Shown piece by piece: positions 1,399-62,281 of a DNA stretch of 64,000 nt (its first letter is position 1; each line of letters opens with the position of its first letter). The stretch spans positions 62,001 through 126,000 of IMG/VR virus record IMGVR_UViG_3300036944_001289; one strand, 5' to 3'. The notes below the pieces were generated by a model. The model ran no database searches, was not told the origin of the DNA, and saw only the letters and a program-made list of their open reading frames with translations. A program made the translations under genes and the position numbers.

Positions 1399-4300
1399 CG
1401 TATGTCAAGATTGTATGTAATATCGCTTATATTTGAAGGTAGTATAGATCTAACTCTATCATTAACTACACTTGTCAAAGAGCTTGCGGTTGTACTATCA
1501 ACGTCTAATCCTTTAATATAAACTAATACTTTATTAGATAATCTACCAGGTATGTTATACTTGAAGATATTATCTACGGTTTCTATAGAATTTCTATCAT
1601 CACAAGTGAAGTCGATGTTTATATTGTCTATAGTTATACCTCTCATATAGAGATACTTAATAAAGTCATCTGATAAGGATATGTTGTATATATTAAAATC
1701 TGATACATCGAAACCTGTTGCAATTATTTTTTGATTTGTTATGTAGTCTGTTATTGACTTGTCACTATAATTCTGATTACCTAAGTATAGAATATTTTTA
1801 ACTATAGTGTCAATAGATAATAAATTAGTAGGTGTACTAATGGAATTAGTTAGTACACCATTAACGTAAACATTAATTACACCGTCGAGTAAATTAAAGT
1901 CCATATCAATATGGTTATCTAGGTATTGTAATGGTATTACGTCAATAATTGAATTATCGTTCAGTACATTAACTGAAGAGTAATTAAACGCCCAATACGA
2001 TACAGGTGTGATTGCAGACCAACTGTGAGCATATGTACTCCATACTCTTGCAGATGTTTGTGTAATAAATGTATTTGGTAAGTTTACTGTTAAACAAAGC
2101 TTATCTTCGTAATTTTTATACGTATTTTCTGCGAAGTAAAATCCAGTACAGTTAACAAACGCGTTATTTCCAGACACTGAAGAAATTGATAGGCTATATG
2201 TTGATAGAATCTTACCTGTAGTAAGGGATATCTTATCAGCAATAATATTATTATTAGTGTCTCTTGAAAAGATTAAAGGTAGAGTTTTATAATCTTCGGA
2301 TATAAAGTCTATTTTGAAACCGTTGACAGCTGACTCTGAAAGGCTTATAGTAGATAATAGCTCTCTATCTGTATTAAAAATCTTTAAGCTATTGTTACTC
2401 TGAATATAGAGATTATTATCGTGACTACTTATATCGTCTATTTTATAGACTGTACTCAACCCGACATACGAGGTATTTGTAGGTAGATTAGTAAACAATA
2501 CATATTTGTCTGATGACAGACTTGCACCAAAAGTATCGTTAATATTTATACCTTTTTCTCCAGGTAATGTAAAGGTACTATCTGTTGATGTGGTAATTAC
2601 TGAACTTGCCCCGTTAGATAGTGTTGTTGAGAGAGCAGTTACGAGTGTCTGTAGATCTGTAATGTAGACAGGGCATGGTGATACATTTTTGGTGGTAAAT
2701 ATAGCTTTATTACCTTTACCATAAAAGTGTCTGCTAGCAACCGATGTTTTAATTCCGTCAGGTATATCTGTATTGTAATTAATTATTTGACCGGTAATGT
2801 CAGTTCTAAATAACCCGTTAGATGTGCGTAATACTATATCTGTTGTTTGTGAAACATAACAGATATCAGATATGTTACCTACAGCAACAGGGTCATATGT
2901 ATTCTTTTTTATAAGATTGAAATCAGTATCATAAAAATACACCGCATTGTTTTGCTGTATAATTATGAAAGGTGTAAAGTAAAAATTTTTACGTAATGCA
3001 AAACCTATATTATAATTGTTACCTAATAACTGATATGCTTTTGCATTTTCGAAATCTTTTGCTTTTATCCTAAAGGATACGTTAAATCTACCAGTACCTA
3101 TACTACCTATATCAAAGCTATCATATACAGAACCGTTAAGTAATAGTTGTTCAGTTTCAGGTTCTTCATTACCTGTATTTATATCGTAAGGTATAATAGT
3201 TTGTCTAAGTAAATTAACGTCTTTACCACTTAAAACATTTTCTATATATTTATTACCTATTCTTGCATAGTAGTAAGTACTATTTGGTTCGAACATTAGT
3301 GCTGACTGTATATCATAAAAATTTAATTTAGTTAGTCCGATATTTTCTACAAAACTATCTAGCTCTGATTTAAATGTAAACACCTGCGATGTACTAGAAC
3401 TGAGTGCATTTATGTATGATGTATTTTGTGGTATATAATATCTATCGTACCAAATACCATCTATGATATTAAACCATGAGCATAAAAATATACCATTTGA
3501 CTCGTTAGCAGTATTAACATTTTTGTTATTATCAAGTAATTTATAAACCCTATCACTAAAGTAAGGAGAAGTTGCAGCGTAAGCACCAGCTTCTTTTAAC
3601 CCGGAATCGTTTATATTAATTCTTGTAAAAGGTGCTATTGTATCAGGCAATGTAAATTTGGTATACTTATCAGGTGTTATTAAGTACTCTTTTGTAAAAA
3701 AATTAAAACCAAGCTGTAATTTTTCGTTAGATGTTTCTTGATAGTCGTTTGTTATAATTGCATTATAATTACGTTGTTGCTTGTTTTTAAAGAAAGGTAC
3801 TCTATTTACAAAGTTATTTTTAGAAGTATAATTTTTTAAGTTAAAAAGATCTACATTACCATCGACTGATGTTGCAGATGGTGTCCAGGTTTCGTAAGGT
3901 GAATATACTAAGAAGTTATTTTTTATATTGGTTAACGAATTATTATTATCTATATTAACACCTGATGTATATAATACAAAATTTTGAGTATTATATACAT
4001 TTGTGTCTCTTGCTTGTCGATTAGTTAAAAAATTTATTCTAGTTTTATTTAGCGCTGAAGGTGTACCTACACTTAAACTATAGACAGCGCTTGAAGGTGC
4101 ACCGTAAACTAACCACCCAGTGCCACTTGTAAGTGTGCAGAATAGGTTAATGATATTATTATCAGAGTCGTATAGATAATTAAAATATGTTGCTGATGCT
4201 GGTGAAAATATTAAGGTGTTGCTAATATTCTCTCGTACAAATAGATATTTTTTGTAATACTTATCATAACTCCAAAGTAAGCATATATTTTCACCACTAG

Positions 4301-51028: not shown

Positions 51029-53608
51029 TCAACTGAATAAATCAAATAAATTAGTTTGAACAATAGAACCTGGCCGTTGTAATTCCCATCTGACATTTTC
51101 ATATAGTCTTTCTACAGCTGCGAGTACAGTCTTTTCAAAGATTAATTCGTAGTCTGGCTGAAAGATCTGTTTAAATTCTTCAGGGTAGTAGTATTTATAA
51201 GCAATTTTTTCGATATTATATTTGTTAGGTGTCTGTAGTTGTAATAATCTAACTTTATCACCGGATGATATCTTTTCGTATTTGTTAGTTAACTGTAGCT
51301 TTTCAATAAGTCTATTATAAAATATTGCTGCTTTAATATGATGCGGTGTACCTTTGGCTATTTCGAAACCATTACTGAGTTGTTCTCTTGCTTCATAATT
51401 ATTTAGATTACTAACCGTTGCAATAGATTCGATCGGTAGTGTCTTAAATATCTCCCACACGTTATTAATTGATATATTCGTTTTAGAATAATCCTGAGTA
51501 GAGAGCATCGTTTCAATTATATCTTTAATATAAGGTTTAACAGCAGATGGTATTGTACTACGTACAACATCTACACCTACGTATTTGTATTTATTACAAG
51601 GTATTTCTTCAATATCTAAGACATGTATTATATATCTTTTCTTCTGTAAGAAGATACCGGTATCAGCTATTGCTTCTCTTTTAAATACAAACCTACTATC
51701 TTCTGAGAATAATTCACGTTCACCCCATACTTTTATTTCGTTATTGAGCATATCACCTAGCTCTTTTACTTTATCGTAAAACTCTTTACTAATCTTGCCA
51801 GGTTTGTTAGAAAATATTACACCGTTTTGTACAATATTATCTAAAGTAAGATAAATAGAATCTGTATCGCCATATACTACGATATCATTATTATCTTGCT
51901 CTGTTATATTTGGTACATTCTCTTTTACGAACTTTTTAGCAACCTCTCCTGCAAATTTAATTACTTCTTGACCGGTTAAGGTTACAGATGAGGCTATATC
52001 GTCGTCACCTAATGGATTGTTTTTGTTACCAAATGCACCATAAGTTGCATTAATATATATCTTTTGAGCCAATTGCTTAGAGTCTAATTGAACACTCTCG
52101 TTCTTTAGATTATTATACTCTTCGCATTCTGTTTGATTTAGTTCTTCTAATTCTTTAATACGAAGTTTTACTTTCTTAAGTTTAGCTTGCGTCTTTTTAC
52201 GCTCCTTGTAGTAATAATCTAATACCTCAGGAAATATACCACGCTTTTTCTGTGTGAATATAATATTTGCCTTACTTATAGTAAGTCTCTCCTTTTGTAT
52301 AAAAAGAGCAAACTTGTCTTCAGTAAGTGTAAATGTTTGACCTGTAACGTGTCGTATTACCACATTACCATCTTCTCGTTTAATTATTTTACCTATCTTT
52401 GTCTCTGGTGATGTATTTAGAGTAATCATCACATTAGGATATAGAGAGTTAGCGTCAAATGATACTATATGCTTTTTAAATCCAGGTAATGGTTCACGAA
52501 CAAACGCACCGGGGTTAACGCCACTCTCTACATTGCGTATAAATGTAGGCAGTATTTGATTCTTATGTTTAGCGCGTATTGCTGCTGCTCCATTTATAAC
52601 TGATATAGAACCCATTGCTGCTTCAAATGTAGTTAGTCCTATATATGCAAACATTCTCACTAGGTTTAAATATCTTAGTTTGAACTCAAGGTTCTTAAGT
52701 AGTCTTACGTCTTGAATATTGTACTCTACAAACTTCTGCCAATTTTCATTGTATAGATCTATTAGATTACCTGTACCAATATCTACCTTTGATTCACCTA
52801 GTTCTAATTTAGCAATACTGTTTAGCTTGTAACTCTCTTTTTCACCTGGTGAGAACCTCTTATATATGTCAAGATAATCTATAAGAGATACACCTTCTAT
52901 AAACCAGCGCTGCAAGTCTTGACCTTTATCGTTGTGTATTTCACGGAAGTACGTTTTACCTGCTGGTGATAAACTATTACGTGTATTATCACCAAAAAGG
53001 TTTTGTACCCTATTCATGATATATGGAATATCGAATCCCATACTATTCCATCCACTTACAATATCGGGTGGATCAGATTTAAACCAATCTATAAACTTAG
53101 TAAGTAATTCTACTTCATTTTTACAATATATAAAGTCTACATCACTATCGACTACATTAAAAGGTTTTTCGCCCCAGCATATAAATCTCTTTGTAGTTGA
53201 ATCATATATAGTAATGACATTGATAGGGTATTTCGAATATCTTGCGTCAGGAAACTCTTCTGCAATAACTTCAATGTCAATAAATACTACTCTTACATCA
53301 TTTTTACTAAAGTCGGGTGTTTCGTTATCTTTATAGAATCGCTCTATAAGAAACTGTTGAACACATGGAAAATTATCGAATACTCTTGTTATACCTGTAT
53401 TGGTGATAAAAGAGCTTCTGTCAAATTGAGTATTAAATATACGTTTAACTAGCTTAGTACCGAATATTGAATCATATTCACCAGGACCTTCTATATAGAG
53501 GTGGGGTTTATAGGTAAAATCTTGTACATTTCTTTTACCATTTTCATCCCACCCTAATATAGTTATCTTCTGTTCTTTGCTGTTATAAAAAGCGTTCCTA
53601 TAACTCAT
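51029..53608 (-). CDS. gp43: Family B DNA polymerase
   Basis: IDIE, GWNSMGFD, YNIQDV, SFDANSLYP, KIYINATYG, YGDTDS, KKRY. Confidence 0.97.
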   Translation of the reverse strand: MSYRNAFYNSKEQKITILGWDENGKRNVQDFTYKPHLYIEGPGEYDSIFGTKLVKRIFNTQFDRSSFITNTGITRVFDNFPCVQQFLIERFYKDNETPDFSKNDVRVVFIDIEVIAEEFPDARYSKYPINVITIYDSTTKRFICWGEKPFNVVDSDVDFIYCKNEVELLTKFIDWFKSDPPDIVSGWNSMGFDIPYIMNRVQNLFGDNTRNSLSPAGKTYFREIHNDKGQDLQRWFIEGVSLIDYLDIYKRFSPGEKESYKLNSIAKLELGESKVDIGTGNLIDLYNENWQKFVEYNIQDVRLLKNLEFKLRYLNLVRMFAYIGLTTFEAAMGSISVINGAAAIRAKHKNQILPTFIRNVESGVNPGAFVREPLPGFKKHIVSFDANSLYPNVMITLNTSPETKIGKIIKREDGNVVIRHVTGQTFTLTEDKFALFIQKERLTISKANIIFTQKKRGIFPEVLDYYYKERKKTQAKLKKVKLRIKELEELNQTECEEYNNLKNESVQLDSKQLAQKIYINATYGAFGNKNNPLGDDDIASSVTLTGQEVIKFAGEVAKKFVKENVPNITEQDNNDIVVYGDTDSIYLTLDNIVQNGVIFSNKPGKISKEFYDKVKELGDMLNNEIKVWGERELFSEDSRFVFKREAIADTGIFLQKKRYIIHVLDIEEIPCNKYKYVGVDVVRSTIPSAVKPYIKDIIETMLSTQDYSKTNISINNVWEIFKTLPIESIATVSNLNNYEAREQLSNGFEIAKGTPHHIKAAIFYNRLIEKLQLTNKYEKISSGDKVRLLQLQTPNKYNIEKIAYKYYYPEEFKQIFQPDYELIFEKTVLAAVERLYENVRWELQRPGSIVQTNLFDLFS

Positions 53609-53623
53609 GCAGAAATATTATAA

Positions 53624-55090
53624 TTATTCCCGATTGTATTTTGTTATATTTTTTCTTGCACTGCTACCATAAGGTGTGCTGTATAGCTCTAAGTAACAAT
53701 CTATATTGGTATCCGTTTCAAGCCAGCGTGTTTCTGCATACTGTCTTGCACGTTTTGATATTGCCTTATATTGTTTGTGGTCTTTAAGAGTTTCGTTGAT
53801 TCTGTCTATCATTTCATCACCAGTCTTGAACTTAATAGGAGCATTTGAGTATGTTACTATATCTTGACATGCAATAGGTAGACCAAAAGCACACGCTTCA
53901 ATATACTTGAGATCGCTCTTAGCTTTATTAAAGTTGTTATCTTGTAGTGGTGCTATCATCATATTTGCTTTAATATTAGCAATATCTTGACCATAGTTAT
54001 ATAACTTAGACCATGGATGAAATTCGATCTTACCAGATTTTACGAGATCCATTAACGGTAATGGAAATGCACCTAAGAATATCCACTGAAACTTATCAAC
54101 AGTCTTACGAATTACATTATTCACATGGAAAAAGTCATCGTTATAATTTCCTGTTCTGTTTTCTACATCGAAATGTGCACCTGAACCTGTATAGAGAATA
54201 CGTGGCTTCTTCTTATTATTATCATAACTTGTCATTATTTCAGTACCATCGTAATAATTACCTAACCAGAACTTAGGCATGAAGTTTGGAATTACTGTAA
54301 CATTCTTATTACCTGTCTTACTCTTGTAGTAATCTTTCATGAAATCACAAGTAACTGTAATTTCATCACACAGAGCCATAATTGCACATGCTGATTCTCT
54401 TATCTCTGGATTATCAAAAGCTGGCTTAAACTTGTTATAGTCTGGTATGTCCTCTTTGAAACAGATATCATCTATTTCATAAATTATTTTCATCCCGTTT
54501 TGTTTTGAAACATCACGTAAGAATCTTACAAATTCAAGCTGTTGTCTTGTTGCTTGTCTTTGAATTCTTACGGACTTTACCATAGTATAATATCTTGGAT
54601 CTAGATTCATTACTGTTGTACCATGCACAACAGCCTTTTGATGAGCGTTGAGTACTTGCTCAGGCCAGATCATTCTCCAGTGACCACCATTTATATTCAG
54701 TTTAAATCGTTAATTAAAACCCGCTTATTAAAGCTGCTATATATTTCTATATAGATTAGACTATATCATCACCTCGTAAGGTGCTCCCCATTTCCACATC
54801 ACTTGATGTGTACTCACTTTTGTGATAGTCGTTGAACGTTCCGTTATGGCTTCGCTGCTGATTACCAGTTAAGGTTTCCAGCAATTAAAGGAGTTTGCAT
54901 TATATATTACTATATAATGGGCCAAGGTTTAGCCTGAGTAGTCTGCGTAGTAGTTTAAAAATCTTGGCAAAGATAGTTCTGGTGGAAGCATTTCTTCACT
55001 CTGTCGTTGAGGCTGTACTGTTTGTTGTATTTGCTGTGTAGGGTCACTAAACGGTAGTCTAGGTCTATTTATTGAATTAGGTACGAACAT
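53624..55090 (-). CDS. GT-B glycosyltransferase, spliced: exon 1 55090-54931, exon 2 54687-53624 (407 aa)
   Basis: Joining the exons gives YYADYSGC-GHWRMIWP in frame (1224 nt); IYEIDD, VIPNF, APLQDNNFNKAKSDLKYIE. Confidence 0.88.
54688..54930 (-). ncRNA. Group I self-splicing intron (243 nt, IA-like, no ORF)
   Basis: Exon ends in U within a GGCU/GGCC P1 (U-G pair); intron ends in G; P AAUUGCUGGAAA, Q AAUCAGCAGCGAAG, R UUCAACGACUA, S GAUAUAGUCU; P7.1 and P7.2 hairpins, P8, P9. Confidence 0.92.
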
Positions 55091-55112
55091 AATTTATATA
55101 CAGTATATTATT

Positions 55113-55982
55113 TTAAAATATTAAGAAATCAAATTTATAACCGTTTTCTTCTACACATTTCTTTTTTGCTAAATTTCTTTCCAAATCAATTTTAAATGTG
55201 TATTCACTTTTAACTTCAATTATTCTTTTTTCTTTAATTATAAAAATATCTGGATAATATCTATGCTCTTTACCATTATATGTATACGTAAAGGGAGGCA
55301 TGTTACATTTACCTGTTTCGATATCATCTTCTGTATAACCTTTAGCTAATAATAAATTAATTGCTTTATTTTCATAGCCTTGTGTTTTAAATTCCTTCTC
55401 TCCTACTATAAATGTTTTTATAGAAAAAGCGCTATTTTGTTGTTTTTCAAAATACTCTGCAACTTGCATAGGGTTAATAACTCCATACTCTTCTTTAAAT
55501 TTTTCTTGATATCTCTTTATTAATTCACCCCAACCATTATATTTTAATATAATGGTCTGTTTAAACAATTCGTTAGTAACATTTTTATAATTATATTGTT
55601 CTTTTCTGTTTCTTTTTTTAATACCATTTTCATTTAAAACTCTAATAATAACACAATTATCTACGCTGTATTTTTTGGATACATAATTGACACCCTTACC
55701 GTTGGAATACTCCTGAATAATATCTTTTATCTCATCTTCTGTAAATTTTTTGTAAATTGTATTGTTTCTTTTTTCATTATATCTTAATATGTTTCTGGAT
55801 TCTTTTTTATTACGTAACGAAACACCGTTTTTAATTATTATTTCTCTAATTACAGATACATTAACGGCATATAGGTTAGCAAGTTCTGACGCTGAGTAAC
55901 CTTCAATATAATTTATTATAATTTCTTTAGCTTTACCTTTTGTATTTTGATGCCTACTTTCATAAACAATATCTATGTTCAT
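55113..55982 (-). CDS. Free-standing PD-(D/E)XK endonuclease with HTH repeats (paralogue of 32565-33587)
   Basis: YGVINPMQ, QGYE, YYPDIF...IIEVKS; TAAATA-N5-ATG. Confidence 0.78.
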   Translation of the reverse strand: MNIDIVYESRHQNTKGKAKEIIINYIEGYSASELANLYAVNVSVIREIIIKNGVSLRNKKESRNILRYNEKRNNTIYKKFTEDEIKDIIQEYSNGKGVNYVSKKYSVDNCVIIRVLNENGIKKRNRKEQYNYKNVTNELFKQTIILKYNGWGELIKRYQEKFKEEYGVINPMQVAEYFEKQQNSAFSIKTFIVGEKEFKTQGYENKAINLLLAKGYTEDDIETGKCNMPPFTYTYNGKEHRYYPDIFIIKEKRIIEVKSEYTFKIDLERNLAKKKCVEENGYKFDFLIF

Positions 55983-56017
55983 ATATATATTTATTGTTTT
56001 GGTTATTGTATTCTTAA

Positions 56018-58042
56018 TTAATCAACAAAGTTTACACGTTTTGTTATTCCGTTATGCTTTTCAAGAAAGATTATATCTCCGTTTACAGCTTTTACACTCT
56101 CTTTTCTATGCGAGATAATTAAAATAGATTCTTTAAACGTTTCTACTCTTTCTTTTAGAATATCTACTACTAGCTCTACACCACGTTGGTCTAAGCTGGT
56201 ATCAAATAGTTCATCATATACAGTTACATTATAGTATACATCTCCGTGAGTCTTTCTCATATCAATAAATGAGAAAAGACATGCTAAATCAATAGCTTTT
56301 CTTTCTGCACCAGAGAAGTTATTATAAAGGCATATCTTACCTTTTTCGTTTAATATCTCTTCTTCAAAATACTCGTTAAATATGCATATACTATTACTAT
56401 CTAGCTTCTTGAGGTAGAATGCTAATTTTGCGTTAAAGTTTTGTAGAATTTTCTTTACTAGGAAACTCTTTACACCTTCTTCACTTATTACAAACTTTAC
56501 AACCTCAAGCATATCAGCTTTCTTTTTAAGACTTTGAATTGTATTATTGGATGTTTCTATCTTTGTATTTGCCTCTTTTATTAATTCATCAAAAGTCGTG
56601 ACATCGTTTGATATAGTTATGCTACCTTCTTGTAACTGTTTATTTAAATTCTGTAAATCTGTAATTCTTTTCTTATTTGACTGTCTTGTAGTTTCTTGCA
56701 CTGCTGCAAGCTTTATATCTTTATTAAGACTATCTATGTGTTTCTTTATTTTGGACTTTTTATCTTCTAAACCATTTGCCTCTTTTACATATGCAGATAA
56801 TGTCTCTACTAATTTTAGCACATCGTTATGCATATTTTTCTTTTCTTTTTCTATCTCCTCTATATCGTGTTCTGATATTGGACGTAAGCATGTAGGGCAA
56901 ATCTGTTCAGTAGTACCTACTTTTTGTAATTGCTCTTTTTTGGTTTTGATTTCGTTTTTTACTGTTGCTACATTTCCAAGTGTCTGATTGCATAGTTCTT
57001 CTACCTTAACCAAAGCCTTAGTATATTTTTCTAATTCTGTATTCTTTTCAGTCTGATTTATTATAACTTCATTTTGAATATCAGTTTCAATCTTTTGTAT
57101 CTCTGCCTCGTTATCTTTGATTTTTTTATTAATCGCTAATATCTTGGTCTCTTTTTCTTTAGACTTTAACTCCTTTTGCTTTTCAAAGGCAGATACACTG
57201 TTTTTAATTTCACTAAGTCTGGCATTTTCTATGTCTAGTTCTCTCTTTGTGCTGTTTTGGTCTTCTCTAAGAGAAGACATCATTGCAGAGAAAACCTGCA
57301 AATTGAATATTTGTTCAATAAACTTTCTTTTCTCTACTTTAGACTTTGACATGAAAGGTAGAGTATCATTTAATGTCATCAGTACACAATTTCTAAATAC
57401 TTCAGGTGATGATGATAGTACAGTTTCAATATACGAATTTGTATTTGCAATAGTATCTAATGTTATATCATTACCATCTTTATAAAGAAACAATCTAGAC
57501 GGTGATAATGTTCTTATTATGTTGTATGTGTTTGTATTACCGTTTTGATTAACATCGAATTCTAATTGCACTTCGCATGTATTTTGAGTTATATTGTTTG
57601 ATATAAACTCTTTCTTAAGTTCTCTTAATGTAGTACCAAATATAGCAAAGTATAATGCATCTGCTATAGTGGAATTGTGTGATGTAATACCGTTACTATA
57701 ATATTCCTTAACGTTTCTAACTTGCAAATCATATAAATTTTTAAATAAATTAGTACCTCTTACGTATTTTATAGTTTCACAACCGTCCTTTGTATGAACA
57801 ATTTCATTTACATTTAAATGTTGAACCTTTACAAACTCTACACCTGTAAATACTCTATGGTTACCTGAACATTTAAGGTTTTTTCCGGCATCAGTTTCAA
57901 TTTCATAAACTTGTTCATTGTATGCTGTTACATCTGCTTCATCGATAGGGTTAAACCCAAATCTTGTCTCTACATCAATATGACCTTTATATTGAGGATA
58001 TACTTTATAAAAATCAGCTATTTGTTTTACAGTAGCTTTCAT
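56018..58042 (-). CDS. gp46: gp46 (Rad50/SbcC) C-terminal precursor: 123-aa IntC plus C-extein
   Basis: Intein block B CSGNH, block F LYDLQV, block G YYSNGITSHN|S; then STIADAL, CPTC zinc hook, FSGAE signature, YDE, IISH. Confidence 0.92.
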   Translation of the reverse strand: MKATVKQIADFYKVYPQYKGHIDVETRFGFNPIDEADVTAYNEQVYEIETDAGKNLKCSGNHRVFTGVEFVKVQHLNVNEIVHTKDGCETIKYVRGTNLFKNLYDLQVRNVKEYYSNGITSHNSTIADALYFAIFGTTLRELKKEFISNNITQNTCEVQLEFDVNQNGNTNTYNIIRTLSPSRLFLYKDGNDITLDTIANTNSYIETVLSSSPEVFRNCVLMTLNDTLPFMSKSKVEKRKFIEQIFNLQVFSAMMSSLREDQNSTKRELDIENARLSEIKNSVSAFEKQKELKSKEKETKILAINKKIKDNEAEIQKIETDIQNEVIINQTEKNTELEKYTKALVKVEELCNQTLGNVATVKNEIKTKKEQLQKVGTTEQICPTCLRPISEHDIEEIEKEKKNMHNDVLKLVETLSAYVKEANGLEDKKSKIKKHIDSLNKDIKLAAVQETTRQSNKKRITDLQNLNKQLQEGSITISNDVTTFDELIKEANTKIETSNNTIQSLKKKADMLEVVKFVISEEGVKSFLVKKILQNFNAKLAFYLKKLDSNSICIFNEYFEEEILNEKGKICLYNNFSGAERKAIDLACLFSFIDMRKTHGDVYYNVTVYDELFDTSLDQRGVELVVDILKERVETFKESILIISHRKESVKAVNGDIIFLEKHNGITKRVNFVD
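57674..58042 (-). mobile_element. Split intein C-fragment (IntC, 123 aa)
   Basis: Ends in HN followed by Ser+1; contains block B, so the split site is atypical. Confidence 0.9.
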
Positions 58043-59095
58043 TAATTTCTTTTTTTATACTTTCTATTTGACTGTTATATGGTTTGTGTGACCAAAATTT
58101 AATAATATTATATCCATTGTCTTTAGCAATTAAATGTTTCTTTTTTTCATGTTCTATTTTTGATGTTATGGAGATGTTTTTATATGGGTATTTAAAATTT
58201 TTAATTTCATCATGTGACATAATTTCAGGATCTGGGTGAAATTCATATCTGTTGTATTCGATAATAATCTTAAGAGAAGATATTGTAAAATCAAAGTAAA
58301 ATATTTTTTTATTATCTCTTAATGAGAACTCCTTAGACCCTGTAATTCCTATCATGATATCATTACGTTGTATACCTAATTTCCTACAAAACTTATATAA
58401 AGGTATTAAAATCTTTAAACTTTCTTTAGAGGCTTTGCCGCGTTTCTTATATGTAATATATTTAAAATTATAATAGTGTGTGTTAAAATTTTCTGTTGTT
58501 TGTTCTATTTTGTTTTCTAAAATATACTTTTTTGTTTTGTGTATGATGTATTGATCTGAACCTTTTTGTACCCTAAATTTACAATAATCATCTAAATTAC
58601 AATTTCGTAATATAAACGACTCTAAACTATGTTGTTTAAGTTTGTTTATTAACTCAATTTCTTTACTACTTTTACAAAGTAATGTAATTTGCCACTTTTT
58701 CTGTCGGTTATTAAAAACTTTTAAACCTTCTAATTCTCCATACTTTTCAATACATTTTTTAAGTGAAAACGTAGACTGCCTTTCCTTAACCTTATTAATT
58801 GCATCTTGCGTTGTTAATCCTTTTTAACCCAATAACCAACTTGATTATTTCTCCAATCCTTTCGTCCTGTATTTTTGCTTTTACTTTTTTGCGATAATAT
58901 TTGTTGATGCTCTAATACTTTTTTAATAGCCTCATCTTCTGTATACCCTTTTTTAATCCAAAAGTACTTTGAGGATTTTCTAAATGAGCTTACATGCCTT
59001 TTTGCTTCTTCTTCTGTAAAAACTATTCCAGTATCAGGGTTGATTCTTTTTCTAGTTACCCAAAATTGCCATTGTTGTGGTGAATTGTAACTCAT
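58014..59095 (-). pseudogene. Vsr/DUF559-like homing endonuclease with a -1 frameshift at ~58820 (about 360 aa if restored)
   Basis: YWVKK|D* becomes YWVKKGLTTQDAINKV in the -1 frame, open to 58014; FYFDF...IIIEYN.YEFH...K...A..NGY.II.FW; own TAAATA-N5-ATG. Confidence 0.8.
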
Positions 59096-59103
59096 ATAAT
59101 TAT

Positions 59104-59337
59104 TTATTGATTCTCAATAAATTTTTTAAACTTTTCCAAAACCATTGCATCCTTTATTTGAATAGTTACTTCAGTCTGCGGATCAACACACTTACCTACA
59201 CCGTTTCTTCTGTCTTCCTTATCTCTATTAATACCGGTGATAATATTTAAACCTGTATTAAAGTCTAAACTAACCACATCATCACCTACTGATAGGAAGT
59301 TTTTTATCTTTATGTTTTTAAAGTTTACGTACTTCAT
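59104..59337 (-). CDS. gp46: gp46 N-terminal precursor: 49-aa N-extein plus 28-aa IntN
   Basis: IKNFLSVG...NIITGIN...NGVGK|CVDPQTEVTIQI...; ATGA-coupled to gp47. Confidence 0.92.
   Translation of the reverse strand: MKYVNFKNIKIKNFLSVGDDVVSLDFNTGLNIITGINRDKEDRRNGVGKCVDPQTEVTIQIKDAMVLEKFKKFIENQ
59107..59190 (-). mobile_element. Split intein N-fragment (IntN, 28 aa)
   Basis: Block A CVDPQTEV directly after the Walker A Lys. Confidence 0.88.
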
Positions 59338-60404
59338 GTAATTACCTTATTGTATAAGGATAAAGTATATTTTATAATTTCCTGTTTGTTATTTATATCT
59401 AACATGCTTACAAATTCTGTTACAATATTTTCTATTTCAGCGCCCTTTATGTCAGAGTCTACTACATCTTCGTGTACTTTTAGTTTATTGTAGTTAACAT
59501 CGTAATCTATTTTAAGATCTGCAGGTTTAAATGTTGTTATTTTACCGACTAAAAGATCTAGATGGTCTGTTGATATATTTTTATCTACTATTAGCTTAAT
59601 AATATTACCTTTAAAGTTATTGCTAAAATATGTGATTGGGTCTTTGTTCGTAATAATCTCTGAAAGAGAAACTTTTAGATGTTTAGGTGTTAATGTGTTT
59701 TCTTTAAATTCAAATTGTAGTGTATCTGTATCTAATAGATAATAACCTTTTGTTTGATAGGCATCACCGAAGTCTGTCTGGAATGGGTTACCTACGTAAA
59801 TTATTTTGCAGATGTTTGAAAATACCTTTTCATCTCGTTGATGAAAGTGTCCTGAAAATACTAGCTTACTTTTTGCTGTTAAATCATCTGGGTTATCTCC
59901 ATGTTCGCAGATTTTATGACCGTTCATTCTAAAATTCTGTAGTTCAAAATGACCAAACACTACATCACTTTGCGGAATATCTTTTATGTCACATCCCCAA
60001 GGGCAGAATGTAAATCGTTTACCATTAAAATCTACACTGGTTATATTATCAAAAATTTGTATATTAGAATTACCTTTCATTATTGAAAGGCTATGAACAT
60101 CTGATGTGTTCTTATAATAGCAGCAATGGTTACCTGGTATCATAATAATCTTAAATTTACTTAATTTTTGTAAAATTAGTGAGTGATAATGTAGAGTTTT
60201 AACTTCTACTGCATCTCTATAATGCATCCAATCACCACAAAATATAACAGTATCTATATTATTAGATTCGAGCTCAGATACAAACCAATTTGCCCAGTTT
60301 AAAGCAACATTTAACCAAAAATCGCTATTTTGATGTACCCCTAAATGTAAGTCCGTAAATATTGCTATTTTATTATTCAGAGGAGTCACTGTCATAATCA
60401 TCAC
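59334..60404 (-). CDS. gp47: Recombination nuclease (Mre11/SbcD-like)
   Basis: TDLHLG, CGD, PGNH, GHFE, SGHFH, YVGNP. Confidence 0.93.
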   Translation of the reverse strand: MMIMTVTPLNNKIAIFTDLHLGVHQNSDFWLNVALNWANWFVSELESNNIDTVIFCGDWMHYRDAVEVKTLHYHSLILQKLSKFKIIMIPGNHCCYYKNTSDVHSLSIMKGNSNIQIFDNITSVDFNGKRFTFCPWGCDIKDIPQSDVVFGHFELQNFRMNGHKICEHGDNPDDLTAKSKLVFSGHFHQRDEKVFSNICKIIYVGNPFQTDFGDAYQTKGYYLLDTDTLQFEFKENTLTPKHLKVSLSEIITNKDPITYFSNNFKGNIIKLIVDKNISTDHLDLLVGKITTFKPADLKIDYDVNYNKLKVHEDVVDSDIKGAEIENIVTEFVSMLDINNKQEIIKYTLSLYNKVIT

Positions 60405-60822
60405 TAATTGGCTTTACGTAGAGGTCAACATCGCAATTTTCTGTTAACTCTTGCTCATACATTCTTTCTTTATACTCTGTTATCGTATCGTGATGCTTCT
60501 TTTCTTTTTTGATTCTATTAATGAATGCATTGAATGCTATTGTTGTAAAGTAACTGAAAGGGTTAAATTCTGATTTAATATCGAACTTTTTATTCTTAAC
60601 TGCAGTATACATCTTTACTATTGCATCGCCTACCATTTCATCTCTATATGTATAGTTAATAAAATTTGAGGAATAACTTAGACCTGTTGCAATTTTATTA
60701 ATATATTCAGCTAACTCATTTGTAATTTCATTAGATTTATAATATATAACAAGTTTCTGTTTAAACTCTTCAGGGTCTACATAATATTCTGTCTTTTTAG
60801 GTTTTGGACCTCGTTTTGCCAT
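60373..60822 (-). CDS. gp55: Late-transcription sigma factor
   Basis: YVD...KIATGLS..NFINYTYRDEMVGD...NPFSYFTTIAFNAFINRIKKEKK. Confidence 0.92.
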   Translation of the reverse strand: MAKRGPKPKKTEYYVDPEEFKQKLVIYYKSNEITNELAEYINKIATGLSYSSNFINYTYRDEMVGDAIVKMYTAVKNKKFDIKSEFNPFSYFTTIAFNAFINRIKKEKKHHDTITEYKERMYEQELTENCDVDLYVKPISDDYDSDSSE

Positions 60823-60835
60823 AGTGAGATTATAT

Positions 60836-62281
60836 TTAATCTAGAGGTTTTTCAACCAGTTTTGTTGAAGAATAATTAATTTTTTCTCTATCGTAAATAG
60901 ATTTGCGATGCATACCGTGAGCACCACCGTATTTTAGATTATCTACTATATCTACAATAGTCAATTTTTGTTTGTTGTTGTGTAATCTTAAACCTCTACC
61001 AATCGATTGTATAATTCTTATAAAGCTTTTACCACCTGATCCAAAAACTATCATATGTATATTTTTTACATTAATACCAGTAGAAAATATGGCACTTATT
61101 GCAACGCAAACTATATTATCTTTAACTTCCATCTCCTTAATAACTCTGTCTCTCTCATCTACATCTACATCACCTCGTATAAAATATACGATTTTATCTT
61201 GTAATTTAGCTTTAAGATTATCGTAAATTAACTGGCCGTGTGATATATGATTTACTAGTATTAGAGTATTGTTATTAAAGTTTTTGCATAGTGTATTAAT
61301 TATATTGTTTCTAAATTTATTATTATAGATGTGTTCTAATTCTGATTTATACTTATTAGTGCCAGGTATTTGAGGAACTTTAGTAGTATAATCTATATCT
61401 AATACTTTAATAGATACTTGTGTAAGATATTTCTCTTCTCTTAATTCAAAACTACTCTTTTCATAGATAATAGTACCTAATTTACTTATAATATTTAGCT
61501 CTTCACCTCTATCATCAGGTAATGTACCTGTAAGACCAAATTTATGGTATGTTTTAATTTCATCTACAAGTTTACATATTTTGTTTTTACCTTTTAATTT
61601 GTGCGTTTCATCAACAATAACTAAATCTACATCGTTTATCCATAGATTTTCTGCATATTTGCTTTGTAATATACCTATATTTGCTATGATAACATCACTG
61701 CTAAGATCAGGTTCTATATTTCCAGTCCATCTTGTAACAGTAAATGGTACTTTATAGCTTAGAAAATCAGAGTGTGTTTGGTTTACAAGTGATAGATCTG
61801 GAACTATCATTAGTGCTTTTAGTTTCTTAACCTTATAATTATAAAACGTACTCAATAAACTTGCTGAGATTAAAGTCTTACCACCACCTGTACCTATTTT
61901 AATTATACCTCTACCGAATGAAAGCGCGTTCTTTATTGTTTCGCTTTGAAAATCTCTAAGTTTAAGAGATAGATCATCATAAACATCAACACCGGTTACT
62001 GTTGGTCTAACTACCTTTGGTATATCTTTATCAATATCTAGGTTTACATCAGTAAAACTTACAGATATAAATTTACATATATCAAAAAATAGCCCCGGCT
62101 CAAACATACCTGTAGGTGTTATAAAGTATTTTCTATCAGCAACAAACCTCATCCCTTTTTTTCTCATAAAAAAGGCACCTTCGTTCTTTACACTGAAATG
62201 TTCCCTTATTTCAGTTAGAAAATCACCAGATAACCTACAAAGTCCACGATTTTTTAGATAATCTATACGTATACTTTTCAT
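60836..62281 (-). CDS. uvsW: SF2 DNA helicase
   Basis: LRDFQ, TGGGKT, VDETH, GLTGT, STGIN, QSIGRGLR. Confidence 0.93.
   Translation of the reverse strand: MKSIRIDYLKNRGLCRLSGDFLTEIREHFSVKNEGAFFMRKKGMRFVADRKYFITPTGMFEPGLFFDICKFISVSFTDVNLDIDKDIPKVVRPTVTGVDVYDDLSLKLRDFQSETIKNALSFGRGIIKIGTGGGKTLISASLLSTFYNYKVKKLKALMIVPDLSLVNQTHSDFLSYKVPFTVTRWTGNIEPDLSSDVIIANIGILQSKYAENLWINDVDLVIVDETHKLKGKNKICKLVDEIKTYHKFGLTGTLPDDRGEELNIISKLGTIIYEKSSFELREEKYLTQVSIKVLDIDYTTKVPQIPGTNKYKSELEHIYNNKFRNNIINTLCKNFNNNTLILVNHISHGQLIYDNLKAKLQDKIVYFIRGDVDVDERDRVIKEMEVKDNIVCVAISAIFSTGINVKNIHMIVFGSGGKSFIRIIQSIGRGLRLHNNKQKLTIVDIVDNLKYGGAHGMHRKSIYDREKINYSSTKLVEKPLD

Follow-up and report, generated by a model that had tools for sequence, protein, structure and literature searches.

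Natural split inteins with a short N-terminal fragment are rare, and about five have been characterised (AceL-TerL, GOS-TerL, the VidaL inteins and PolB16); a short N-terminal half (IntN) is sought after for protein semisynthesis and labelling, being within reach of peptide synthesis. VidaL and PolB16 OarG are atypically split at a site called S1 and have an IntN of 15–16 aa (PDB 6vgv; PMC10189870, PMC13014065), and AceL-TerL and GOS-TerL break after helix alpha1, at a site called S2 (the S1/S2 classification is from PMC13014065). Split inteins also occur in the 'fractured genes' of Dassa, London, Stoddard, Schueler-Furman and Pietrokovski (NAR 2009; PMC2677866), in which a phage DNA-metabolism gene is parted in two by a split intein with a free-standing endonuclease gene between the halves. 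The hosts described there are gp41, IMPDH, DnaE, NrdA, NrdJ, ligase, terminase and one unknown, with no gp46/SbcC/Rad50 among them; half of the loci hold a Vsr-like endonuclease, the 3' end of a homing endonuclease gene (HEG) overlapping the start of the downstream half has been described, and an SbcD-like gene (the partner subunit) is broken by a Vsr-like gene without an intein (PMC2677866). Here we describe the gp46 gene in a stretch of 64,000 nucleotides (nt) from an uncultured virus (positions 62,001 to 126,000 of IMG/VR record IMGVR_UViG_3300036944_001289; hereafter 'the window'), which, as judged from its sequence, is interrupted within the Walker A motif by a naturally split intein whose IntN is short (28 aa) and whose C-terminal half (IntC) is long (123 aa).

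As in fractured genes, two adjacent open reading frames (ORFs) on the same strand carry the intein halves, a free-standing HEG lies between them, and the HEG runs at its 3' end into the beginning of the downstream half, here by 29 nt. Unlike the described inteins, which bar one (terminase) break at the canonical insertion site of the homing endonuclease, the gp46 intein breaks near its N terminus, and the window HEG is frameshifted. The selfish element is thus of a known kind, but gp46 has not been described as a host gene for it; the twist is a helix in the IntN, and the homing cycle is unusually fully documented. No description of a split intein in gp46, SbcC or Rad50 was found among the open-access papers searched, in agreement with an earlier sequence-only reading of the window, whose author knew of no characterised atypical split intein in gp46. 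Inteins are known to favour the P-loops of ATPases, as reportedly described by Novikova et al. 2016.

The case begins with the host protein. The two gp46 ORFs (Table 1) have the coordinates and translations that the sequence-only reading had described, about 1.06 kb apart, with 1061 nt between the N-ORF stop and the C-ORF ATG, and the break point falls between Lys49 and the Ser of the Walker A sequence GVGK/ST. When aligned to the PHROG SbcC-like profile, residues 1–49 of the N-ORF cover positions 293–333 and residues 124–668 of the C-ORF cover positions 334–951 (E 8e-68); since the N- and C-exteins adjoin at positions 333/334, they abut to the residue. Removal of the intein thus leaves an uninterrupted conserved host protein, the predicted spliced gp46 of 49 + 551 = 600 aa with GVGK-ST rebuilt, as had been proposed, and such a protein exists in nature: among 80 IMG/VR loci collected by a family profile, ~35 closer relatives (36–55% identity) have an N-extein that runs straight into the C-extein. 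The window N-extein is 57–73% identical to the N-termini of uninterrupted gp46 (loci L001–L040), and in very close relatives, protein fragments have the sequence ..RRNGVGKSTVADALYF.. or ..RRNGVGKSTIADALYF.. (GVGKST context; ..STIADALYF). The CxxC zinc hook and the signature/Walker B regions lie in the C-extein, whose tblastn matches are gp46 proteins of cyanophages and pelagiphages; the window gp46 is only ~25% identical to the gp46 of any cultured phage. The gp46 genes of S-SSM7 and a Bacillus phage were considered as further intein carriers, as tblastn seemed to reach into the IntC, and were rejected; S-SSM7 gp46 is an ordinary protein of 574 aa without an intein. Annotation should treat the ORFs of 77 and 674 aa as a single gp46; among the source names that our searches returned, the small ORFs are 'hypothetical protein' or nameless.

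The intein halves themselves carry the residues expected of a class 1 intein, i.e. a Cys1 nucleophile, the block B SxxH, the block F Asp, the block G His-Asn and a +1 Ser. Cys1 directly follows GVGK in the window, and Cys occupies that position in 41 of the 41 N-parts compared (11 split and 30 contiguous relatives, ungapped conservation). The IntC contains CSGNH (SxxH), LYDLQV and, at residues 121–123, SHN, followed by STIADAL; across 13 relatives, full-length proteins down to 23% identical to the window's, S59, H62, D105 and S121-H122-N123-S124-T125 are invariant. The blocks and the Cys1 had been assigned in this way in the sequence-only reading, and the assignment is borne out both by this invariance and by the predicted Hint fold of a contiguous relative (see below). 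In distant relatives, the IntC is better conserved than the C-extein (43–49% vs 22–28%). Weak sequence matches of the IntC in the PDB are to Cat, NrdJ-1 and VidaL.

Table 1. Positions in the window of the split gp46 gene, its cassette and the neighbouring genes
Feature	Position	Strand	Content or basis
gp46 N-ORF	59104..59337	-	77 aa; ..RRNGVGK, then CVDPQTEVTIQIKDAMVLEKFKKFIENQ and stop (ORF list)
gp46 N-extein	59191..59337	-	codons 1-49, to the Walker A end GVGK (ORF list; PHROG SbcC-like profile)
IntN	59107..59190	-	28 codons from Cys1; stop at 59104-59106; strands beta1-beta2 at residues 1-12, amphipathic helix at ~15-26
HEG 5' piece	58814..59095	-	93 codons + premature stop; N-terminal DNA-binding-type repeats (YW..GY.E.EA)
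Frameshift site	58821..58825	-	A5 run within U-AAA-AAG, -1 slippery-type; A6 in the sister strain's intact allele
HEG 3' piece	58014..58823	-	-1 frame, 269-codon open stretch; FSL..CIEKYG..RQ.KWQ module; nuclease domain FDF .. IIEYN .. H-P .. W
Overlap of HEG 3' end and start of IntC-gp46C	58014..58042	-	29 nt (coordinates)
gp46 C-ORF	56018..58042	-	674 aa; begins MKATVKQIADFY (ORF list)
IntC	57674..58042	-	123 codons; beta3/alpha1 (MKATVKQIADFY), block B S59..H62, block F D105, block G H122-N123
gp46 C-extein	56018..57673	-	551 codons + stop, from Ser+1-Thr of Walker A (PHROG profile; tblastn)
Low-divergence tract vs sister strain L097	57576..59196	-	IntN-HEG-IntC cassette (57674..59190) + ~100 nt of C-extein
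gp47	59334..60404	-	Mre11/SbcD-like phosphoesterase, gp46 partner; Pfam Metallophos E 2e-9
Late sigma factor gp55-like gene	60373..60822	-	weak Sigma70_r2 match, E 0.003
UvsW-type helicase gene	60836..62281	-	
DUF7487 / PD-ExK-type endonuclease-like gene	55113..55982	-	free-standing, 289 aa; Pfam PF24308 E 1.5e-26
Exon 1 of the intron-bearing gene	54931..55090		
Group I intron	54688..54930	-	ORF-less, 243 nt; Rfam RF00028, 96.6 bits, E 1.5e-25; match spans 54737..54941
Exon 2 of the intron-bearing gene	53624..54687		
Family B DNA polymerase gene	51029..53608		

Additional evidence comes from structure prediction. The AlphaFold2 model is of a natural contiguous relative, P0008 (L093:3100–3621), and was built from a MAFFT alignment in which 3 rows were contiguous, 8 were IntC and 7 were trimmed IntN; it has a predicted local distance difference test score (pLDDT) of 90.8 and a predicted template modelling score (pTM) of 0.85. 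The best PDB match of this model by Foldseek is VidaL (6vgv, E 7e-10, TMt 0.83), the next being NrdJ-1, Npu DnaB, Ssp DnaB and gp41-1. Of 62 PDB matches at E <= 0.001, 50 were listed, and all 50 are Hint-fold proteins, mostly inteins, so this contiguous relative is predicted to belong to the Hint fold.

We therefore consider it very probable that the window holds a 'fractured' gp46, in which a mobile IntN-HEG-IntC cassette sits within the Walker A codons and the two halves trans-splice to a 600-aa Rad50-like ATPase. Two polypeptides would be made, gp46(1–49)-IntN (77 aa) and IntC-gp46(50–600) (674 aa), and the IntN (beta1-beta2 and an extra amphipathic helix) would dock onto the IntC (beta3/alpha1 onward, with blocks B, F and G). 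Class 1 chemistry would then follow: an N-S acyl shift at Cys1, transesterification to Ser+1, cyclisation of Asn123 and an O-N shift. The product would be a 600-aa ATPase with an intact GVGKST loop, acting with gp47, and the HEG would move the cassette into intein-less gp46 alleles of co-infecting phages. The anatomy, the exact abutment of the exteins, the conserved catalytic residues, the predicted Hint fold of a contiguous relative, the recurrent split point and the low divergence specific to the cassette are observed in this analysis; that the fragments associate and trans-splice, what the HEG targets and what the IntN helix does are inferred from them.

Several points weigh against this reading. 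Trans-splicing is a prediction; the window IntC scores below threshold against Pfam Intein_splicing (E 6.5e-4, 20 bits, for a cut-off of 35.8); the structure model is of a relative 45% identical to the window rather than of the window's two fragments together; and docking of the IntN helix and pairing of beta2 with beta3 are read from modelled secondary structure only. The C-fragment start has an unstructured A-rich leader without a clear Shine–Dalgarno sequence (AAAGAAATTAATG), and the HEG frameshift removes any translational coupling to the IntC start. Finally, the C-terminal domain of the HEG may be Vsr/DUF559-like on items of sequence and modelling that are consistent but each individually weak. 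One could ask from the first and fifth of these points, predicted splicing and weak translation signals for the C-fragment, whether gp46 has simply been inactivated by HEG insertion, with no splicing, and the phage manages without gp46 or with host SbcCD. This we judge highly unlikely. Both ORFs are intact, at 77 and 674 codons, and both exteins have a ratio of nonsynonymous to synonymous divergence (pN/pS) of ~0.05 against the sister strain L097, at a pS of 0.27 in the N-extein and 0.24 in the C-extein (gp47, with a pS of 0.35, has a pN/pS of ~0.05 too). The catalytic residues of the intein are invariant in dozens of lineages, and loci that have no HEG retain both halves with good ribosome-binding sites (AAGGA or TAGGTAA upstream of the C-fragment start).

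Could the spacer instead be an assembly artefact or an RNA-spliced intron? A region of 5.5 kb is 100% identical in a JGI metagenome and in two SRA runs, three assemblies made independently, and a 95%-identical sister strain with the same layout occurs in at least 5 further samples; the split therefore does not stem from assembly. Introns are not foreign to this genome, as the next gene, 1.1 kb downstream, holds a genuine group I intron; however, a group I intron in the spacer, when tried as a candidate, was ruled out, Rfam at E <= 1 being blank in 55000–60500. The flanks of the spacer encode intein halves, and the gaps in HEG-less relatives are only 59–112 bp. We regard this explanation as having next to no chance of being right, and the concern of the sequence-only reading that the intervening region might be such an artefact or intron is thereby all but settled.

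The 1.06-kb spacer is, by six-frame translation, one HEG in two frames, which the sequence-only reading had not noticed. The short-IntN split intein of that earlier description stands; the locus, having a free-standing HEG as its spacer, is a 'fractured gene' rather than a bare split. The 5' piece of the HEG is colinear with residues 1–92 of the intact 357-aa HEG of L086 (52% identity), and the 3' piece is 46% identical to the same protein and matches phrog_22677 (E 5e-11). Intact HEGs at the same place, with which both pieces are colinear, are found in L086 (357 aa), L083 (359 aa), L082 (433 aa) and the sister strain L097 (360 aa). The A-run at the frame junction is the only gap in the 4491-nt alignment of the window with L097, the A5 allele is identical in the three assemblies, and the HEG has 1 other mismatch to L097 across 1.08 kb. 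Therefore, the HEG frame of the window has just been broken by the loss of one A from an A6 run, which places this copy at the onset of decay within the homing cycle. A different view of the same junction is that the HEG is still expressed at a low level through a programmed -1 frameshift on U-AAA-AAG, giving a 359-aa enzyme, as regulation rather than decay. The two frames meet precisely at a slippery sequence of the A-AAG type, slippage by -1 there yields ..GYWVKK-GLTTQD.., which is colinear with intact homologs, both pieces are otherwise free of stops, and all three assemblies have the allele; nevertheless, the sister strain and every other relative have the HEG in one frame, no mutation is commoner than the loss of a single base from a homopolymer, no stimulatory structure came to light, and the copy is so young, with its single other mismatch, that missing further stops say nothing. 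On balance, programmed frameshifting seems a poor prospect, and we read the frameshift as recent decay.

What kind of endonuclease does the HEG encode? The protein may be akin to the Vsr-like (EDxHD) homing endonucleases, e.g. I-Bth0305I (PDB 3r3p; PMC3239194), and to DUF559 proteins: N-terminal helical DNA-binding repeats precede a small C-terminal nuclease domain, the Asp of FDF, the Glu of IEYN, the His of H-P and a Trp are conserved and follow the Vsr motif order, and the gene is free-standing in a fractured gene. Direct matches to those enzymes are weak, and related loci carry other nuclease domains behind the same N-terminal module. The L086 HEG matches Pfam DUF559 at E 0.002, which is below the cut-off; among 353 HEG homologs, PF04480 occurs in two, and JGI gives four the name very-short-patch-repair endonuclease. 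In sequence searches of the PDB, neither the single protein nor a 3-sequence profile gave a match, and a 21-sequence profile gave a weak one to 3hrl, a DUF559-like structure (E 0.11, both motif blocks in order). The HEG model is of low confidence (pLDDT 63.3) and its Foldseek match to 3r3p, at a probability of 0.60, is a hint, 3r3p being the only nuclease among the top matches.

HEGs at the same gp46 site share the N-terminal module (the YW..GY.E.EA repeats and FSL..CIEKYG..RQ.KWQ) and differ in their C-terminal nuclease domains. The latter appear Vsr/DUF559-like in the window, L086 and L097 and D..E-type PD-ExK-like in L082 (HEG at L082:2457-3758) and L083 (L083:2971-4050); the L041 HEG (2990-4000) has a GIY-YIG/T5orf172-looking domain, without Pfam confirmation. 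As far as sequence comparison goes, this suggests that the nuclease domain is swapped on a fixed targeting module.

The sister strain also provides a record of movement. L097 is 95% identical to the window over 4.5 kb, and the cassette (1517 nt) differs by only 7 mismatches and the A-run indel, where ~107 mismatches would be expected at the flank rate. The low-divergence tract has a sharp 5' edge, with mismatches at 59203, 59200 and 59197 next to the Cys1 codon at 59188–59190, and a gradual 3' edge, with no mismatch for ~100 nt into the C-extein; the latter suggests that the HEG may cut on the C-extein side of the insertion site. This pattern points to a cassette that was recently acquired or converted as a unit between diverged genomes, fits an endonuclease that was active until very recently, and, being specific to the cassette, lends indirect support to the HEG cleaving the HEG-less allele. 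With a sister pair that has diverged flanks and a near-identical cassette, and with every state of the homing cycle present in closely related genomes, natural material is at hand for testing the model that split inteins originate by gene breaking.

Those states are found among the relatives. Comparison with metagenomic gp46 loci, a check that the sequence-only reading had named, revealed the same split point in at least 11 other loci, and the relatives would represent stages of a homing cycle: the HEG is intact, or it is lost with the halves 59–112 bp apart, or the intein is contiguous. Split loci with a HEG are L041, L082, L083, L086 and L097–L101 (of which L082, L083, L086 and L097 have an intact HEG); split loci without one are L084/85 (112-bp gap) and L087/88 (59-bp gap); further N-fragments are P0016, P0017, P0019 and P0020; and contiguous forms are L089, L093 and L094/95, with L093 and L094/95 coming from the same metagenome as the split L082. 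A side observation is P0029, a called protein of 49 aa on a 6.4-kb contig whose last residues are ..RRNGVGK, exactly at the splice junction, which may stem from gene calling or from a break of a different kind at this site.

The family extends well beyond these loci. A profile search of 1.84 billion representatives returned 69 proteins at E <= 1e-30. In a classified set of 161 (the best 150 representatives and 11 earlier matches), 94 begin with the IntC (a match starting within the first 12 residues), 43 are contiguous and 79 are recognisably gp46-like, and many of the rest have the same ..SHN-S(T/S)..(F/Y)G(K) junction typical of Rad50/SMC heads. The gp46 locus is thus a member of a large, diverse and uncharacterised short-IntN family with dozens of clusters at 50% identity, Cys1/Ser+1 and an IntN of 25–32 aa. 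Among cultured phages we found no gp46 counterpart, the best 25 of 256 matching records all lying under terminase genes or unannotated ORFs; these cultured-phage matches (Vibrio phage Kuja, Vi1-like phages) are 33–37% identical and start at IntC residue ~21. A BFVD search gives the same picture, with Kuja TerL as the top structural match.

Where in the intein fold does the break lie? In the P0008 model, the elements run beta1, beta2 (7–12), a helix (15–25), a less confident loop, a short strand and a helix; in the numbering of the model construct, the strand is at 15–20, the first helix at 23–33, the next strand at 44–47 and the second helix at 48–57. The counterpart of the short strand is M-K-A-T, with which the split IntC begins, that of the next helix is ..KQIADFY.., and the first helix, which is the IntN tail, is modelled at a pLDDT of ~95. 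As modelled, this is the canonical succession of beta2 and beta3-alpha1, with the hairpin loop enlarged by an additional helix, so that the break, between beta2 and beta3/alpha1, would be at the S1 position, as in VidaL and PolB16, and not at S2 after alpha1; HMMER likewise aligns IntC residues 5–12 with VidaL residues 28–35. The sequence-only reading had placed the break after the first strands, VidaL-like, with ATVKQIADFY in the IntC, and the equivalent element in the model is indeed beta3/alpha1. With VidaL and PolB16 the gp46 intein thus probably shares a break after beta2, with alpha1 and blocks B, F and G all in the IntC, and halves of 28 and 123 aa agree with the short IntN (15–37 aa) and long IntC of natural atypical inteins; VidaL, in addition, has the same Cys1 nucleophile and is the best structural match of the modelled relative, although the similarity in sequence is marginal (E 0.13, 17% identity).

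Unlike in VidaL and PolB16, where the host proteins are others, the gp46 IntN is not beta1-beta2 only. In each of the 11 split IntNs, beta2 is followed by an extra conserved amphipathic helix of ~12 residues, which brings the IntN of relatives to 25–32 aa; position 21 is hydrophobic in 82% of the 41 N-parts, and positions 17, 21 and 24/25 in 56–82%. The earlier suggestion that the functional IntN may be 12–16 aa is accordingly doubtful, as the helix, at residues ~15–26, is conserved in 11 of 11.

By sequence, the closest inteins are AceL-TerL/GOS-TerL, Cat (PDB 6dsl; E 0.007 for the Cat IntC) and the TerL inteins of cultured phages, those of Vibrio phage Kuja and Ackermannviridae being 33–37% identical to the gp46 intein. 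The gp46 intein is like AceL-TerL and GOS-TerL in its short IntN (25–37 aa) and T4-like phage origin and unlike them in that they break after alpha1, their host gene is terminase, and the similarity starts only past IntC residue ~20. The last point can be turned around: if the gp46 intein had an AceL/GOS-TerL-type break (S2), the IntN tail helix would be the canonical alpha1 and the strand and helix at the IntC start (MKATVKQIADFY) would be the extra element, and the matches to Cat (6dsl_B) and to the TerL inteins of cultured phages do begin only past that helix. By eye, the IntN tail (MVLEKFKKFI) is also like the AceL-TerL alpha1; this is a lead rather than a test. In the model, however, the strand at 44–47 directly precedes the second helix, as in canonical beta3-alpha1, and the first helix comes straight after beta2; the alignment with VidaL and its rank as best structural match speak for S1; and some contiguous family members (P0145, P0084 and P0108) lack the first helix and keep the second. 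We therefore hold the S2 assignment to be unlikely, if less so than programmed frameshifting of the HEG, and prefer a break at S1.

A wider proposal is offered tentatively, as one that we think has a modest chance of being right as a whole. The IntN amphipathic helix may be a dedicated docking module that arose in the beta2-beta3 loop and made that loop a viable place for a HEG to break the intein. The gp46 family, in which contiguous inteins without the helix, contiguous inteins with it, split inteins with a HEG and split inteins without one are all present, might then be a natural record of the birth of a split intein at a non-canonical site, and could supply short-IntN inteins with an affinity handle unlike those of VidaL and AceL-TerL. 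Additionally, splicing of gp46 could couple the spread of the element to the recombination capacity of the cell, because gp46/gp47 resect the breaks on which homing depends.

Signals of expression were also sought. The gp46 start codon overlaps the gp47 stop (ATGA); because of this overlap, the common strand and the lack of terminators, gp47 and gp46 are probably co-transcribed, no terminator having been found between the gp46 ORFs on the minus strand. Promoter and terminator scans gave no enrichment over shuffles, TATAAATA is not enriched in the window, and no tRNA or non-coding RNA was found in the region. A 5' hairpin with a late-promoter element, which occurs in many but not all fractured-gene loci, is absent from the window and from L086, no significant hairpin being present upstream of the window HEG (z-score -0.45) or IntC starts. 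In L082 and L083, strong RNA hairpins do lie upstream of the intact HEGs (L082:2390-2470, z-score -4.6; L083:2900-2985, z-score -5.4); they contain the T4-type late-promoter box TATAAATA and bury the Shine–Dalgarno sequence and start codon of the HEG, an arrangement like that described for Aeh1 mobE-type regulation.

The surroundings of gp47/gp46 are a T4-like replication/recombination module of an uncultured AT-rich (~30% GC) myovirus. The gp55-like late sigma factor gene and the UvsW-type helicase gene lie upstream of gp47, and a family B DNA polymerase gene lies on the other side (Table 1). In the gene just downstream of gp46 sits the group I intron, which is preceded by U (54931), has G (54688) as its last base and interrupts a Cys codon (T/GT). 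The uninterrupted form of this gene is found in L089 (402 aa, 72% identity), and the sister L097 reads ..DYSGCGHWRM.. there; therefore, the 349-aa ORF at 53624..54673 is only part of a ~403-aa protein, whose function is unassigned. Directly upstream of exon 1 is the DUF7487 endonuclease-like gene. L097 has neither this gene nor the intron, with ~1.0 kb and 243 nt absent at those sites. A free-standing HEG beside an ORF-less intron is the layout of 'collaborative homing', and with this pair next to the gp46 cassette, two different selfish splicing elements lie within 5 kb.

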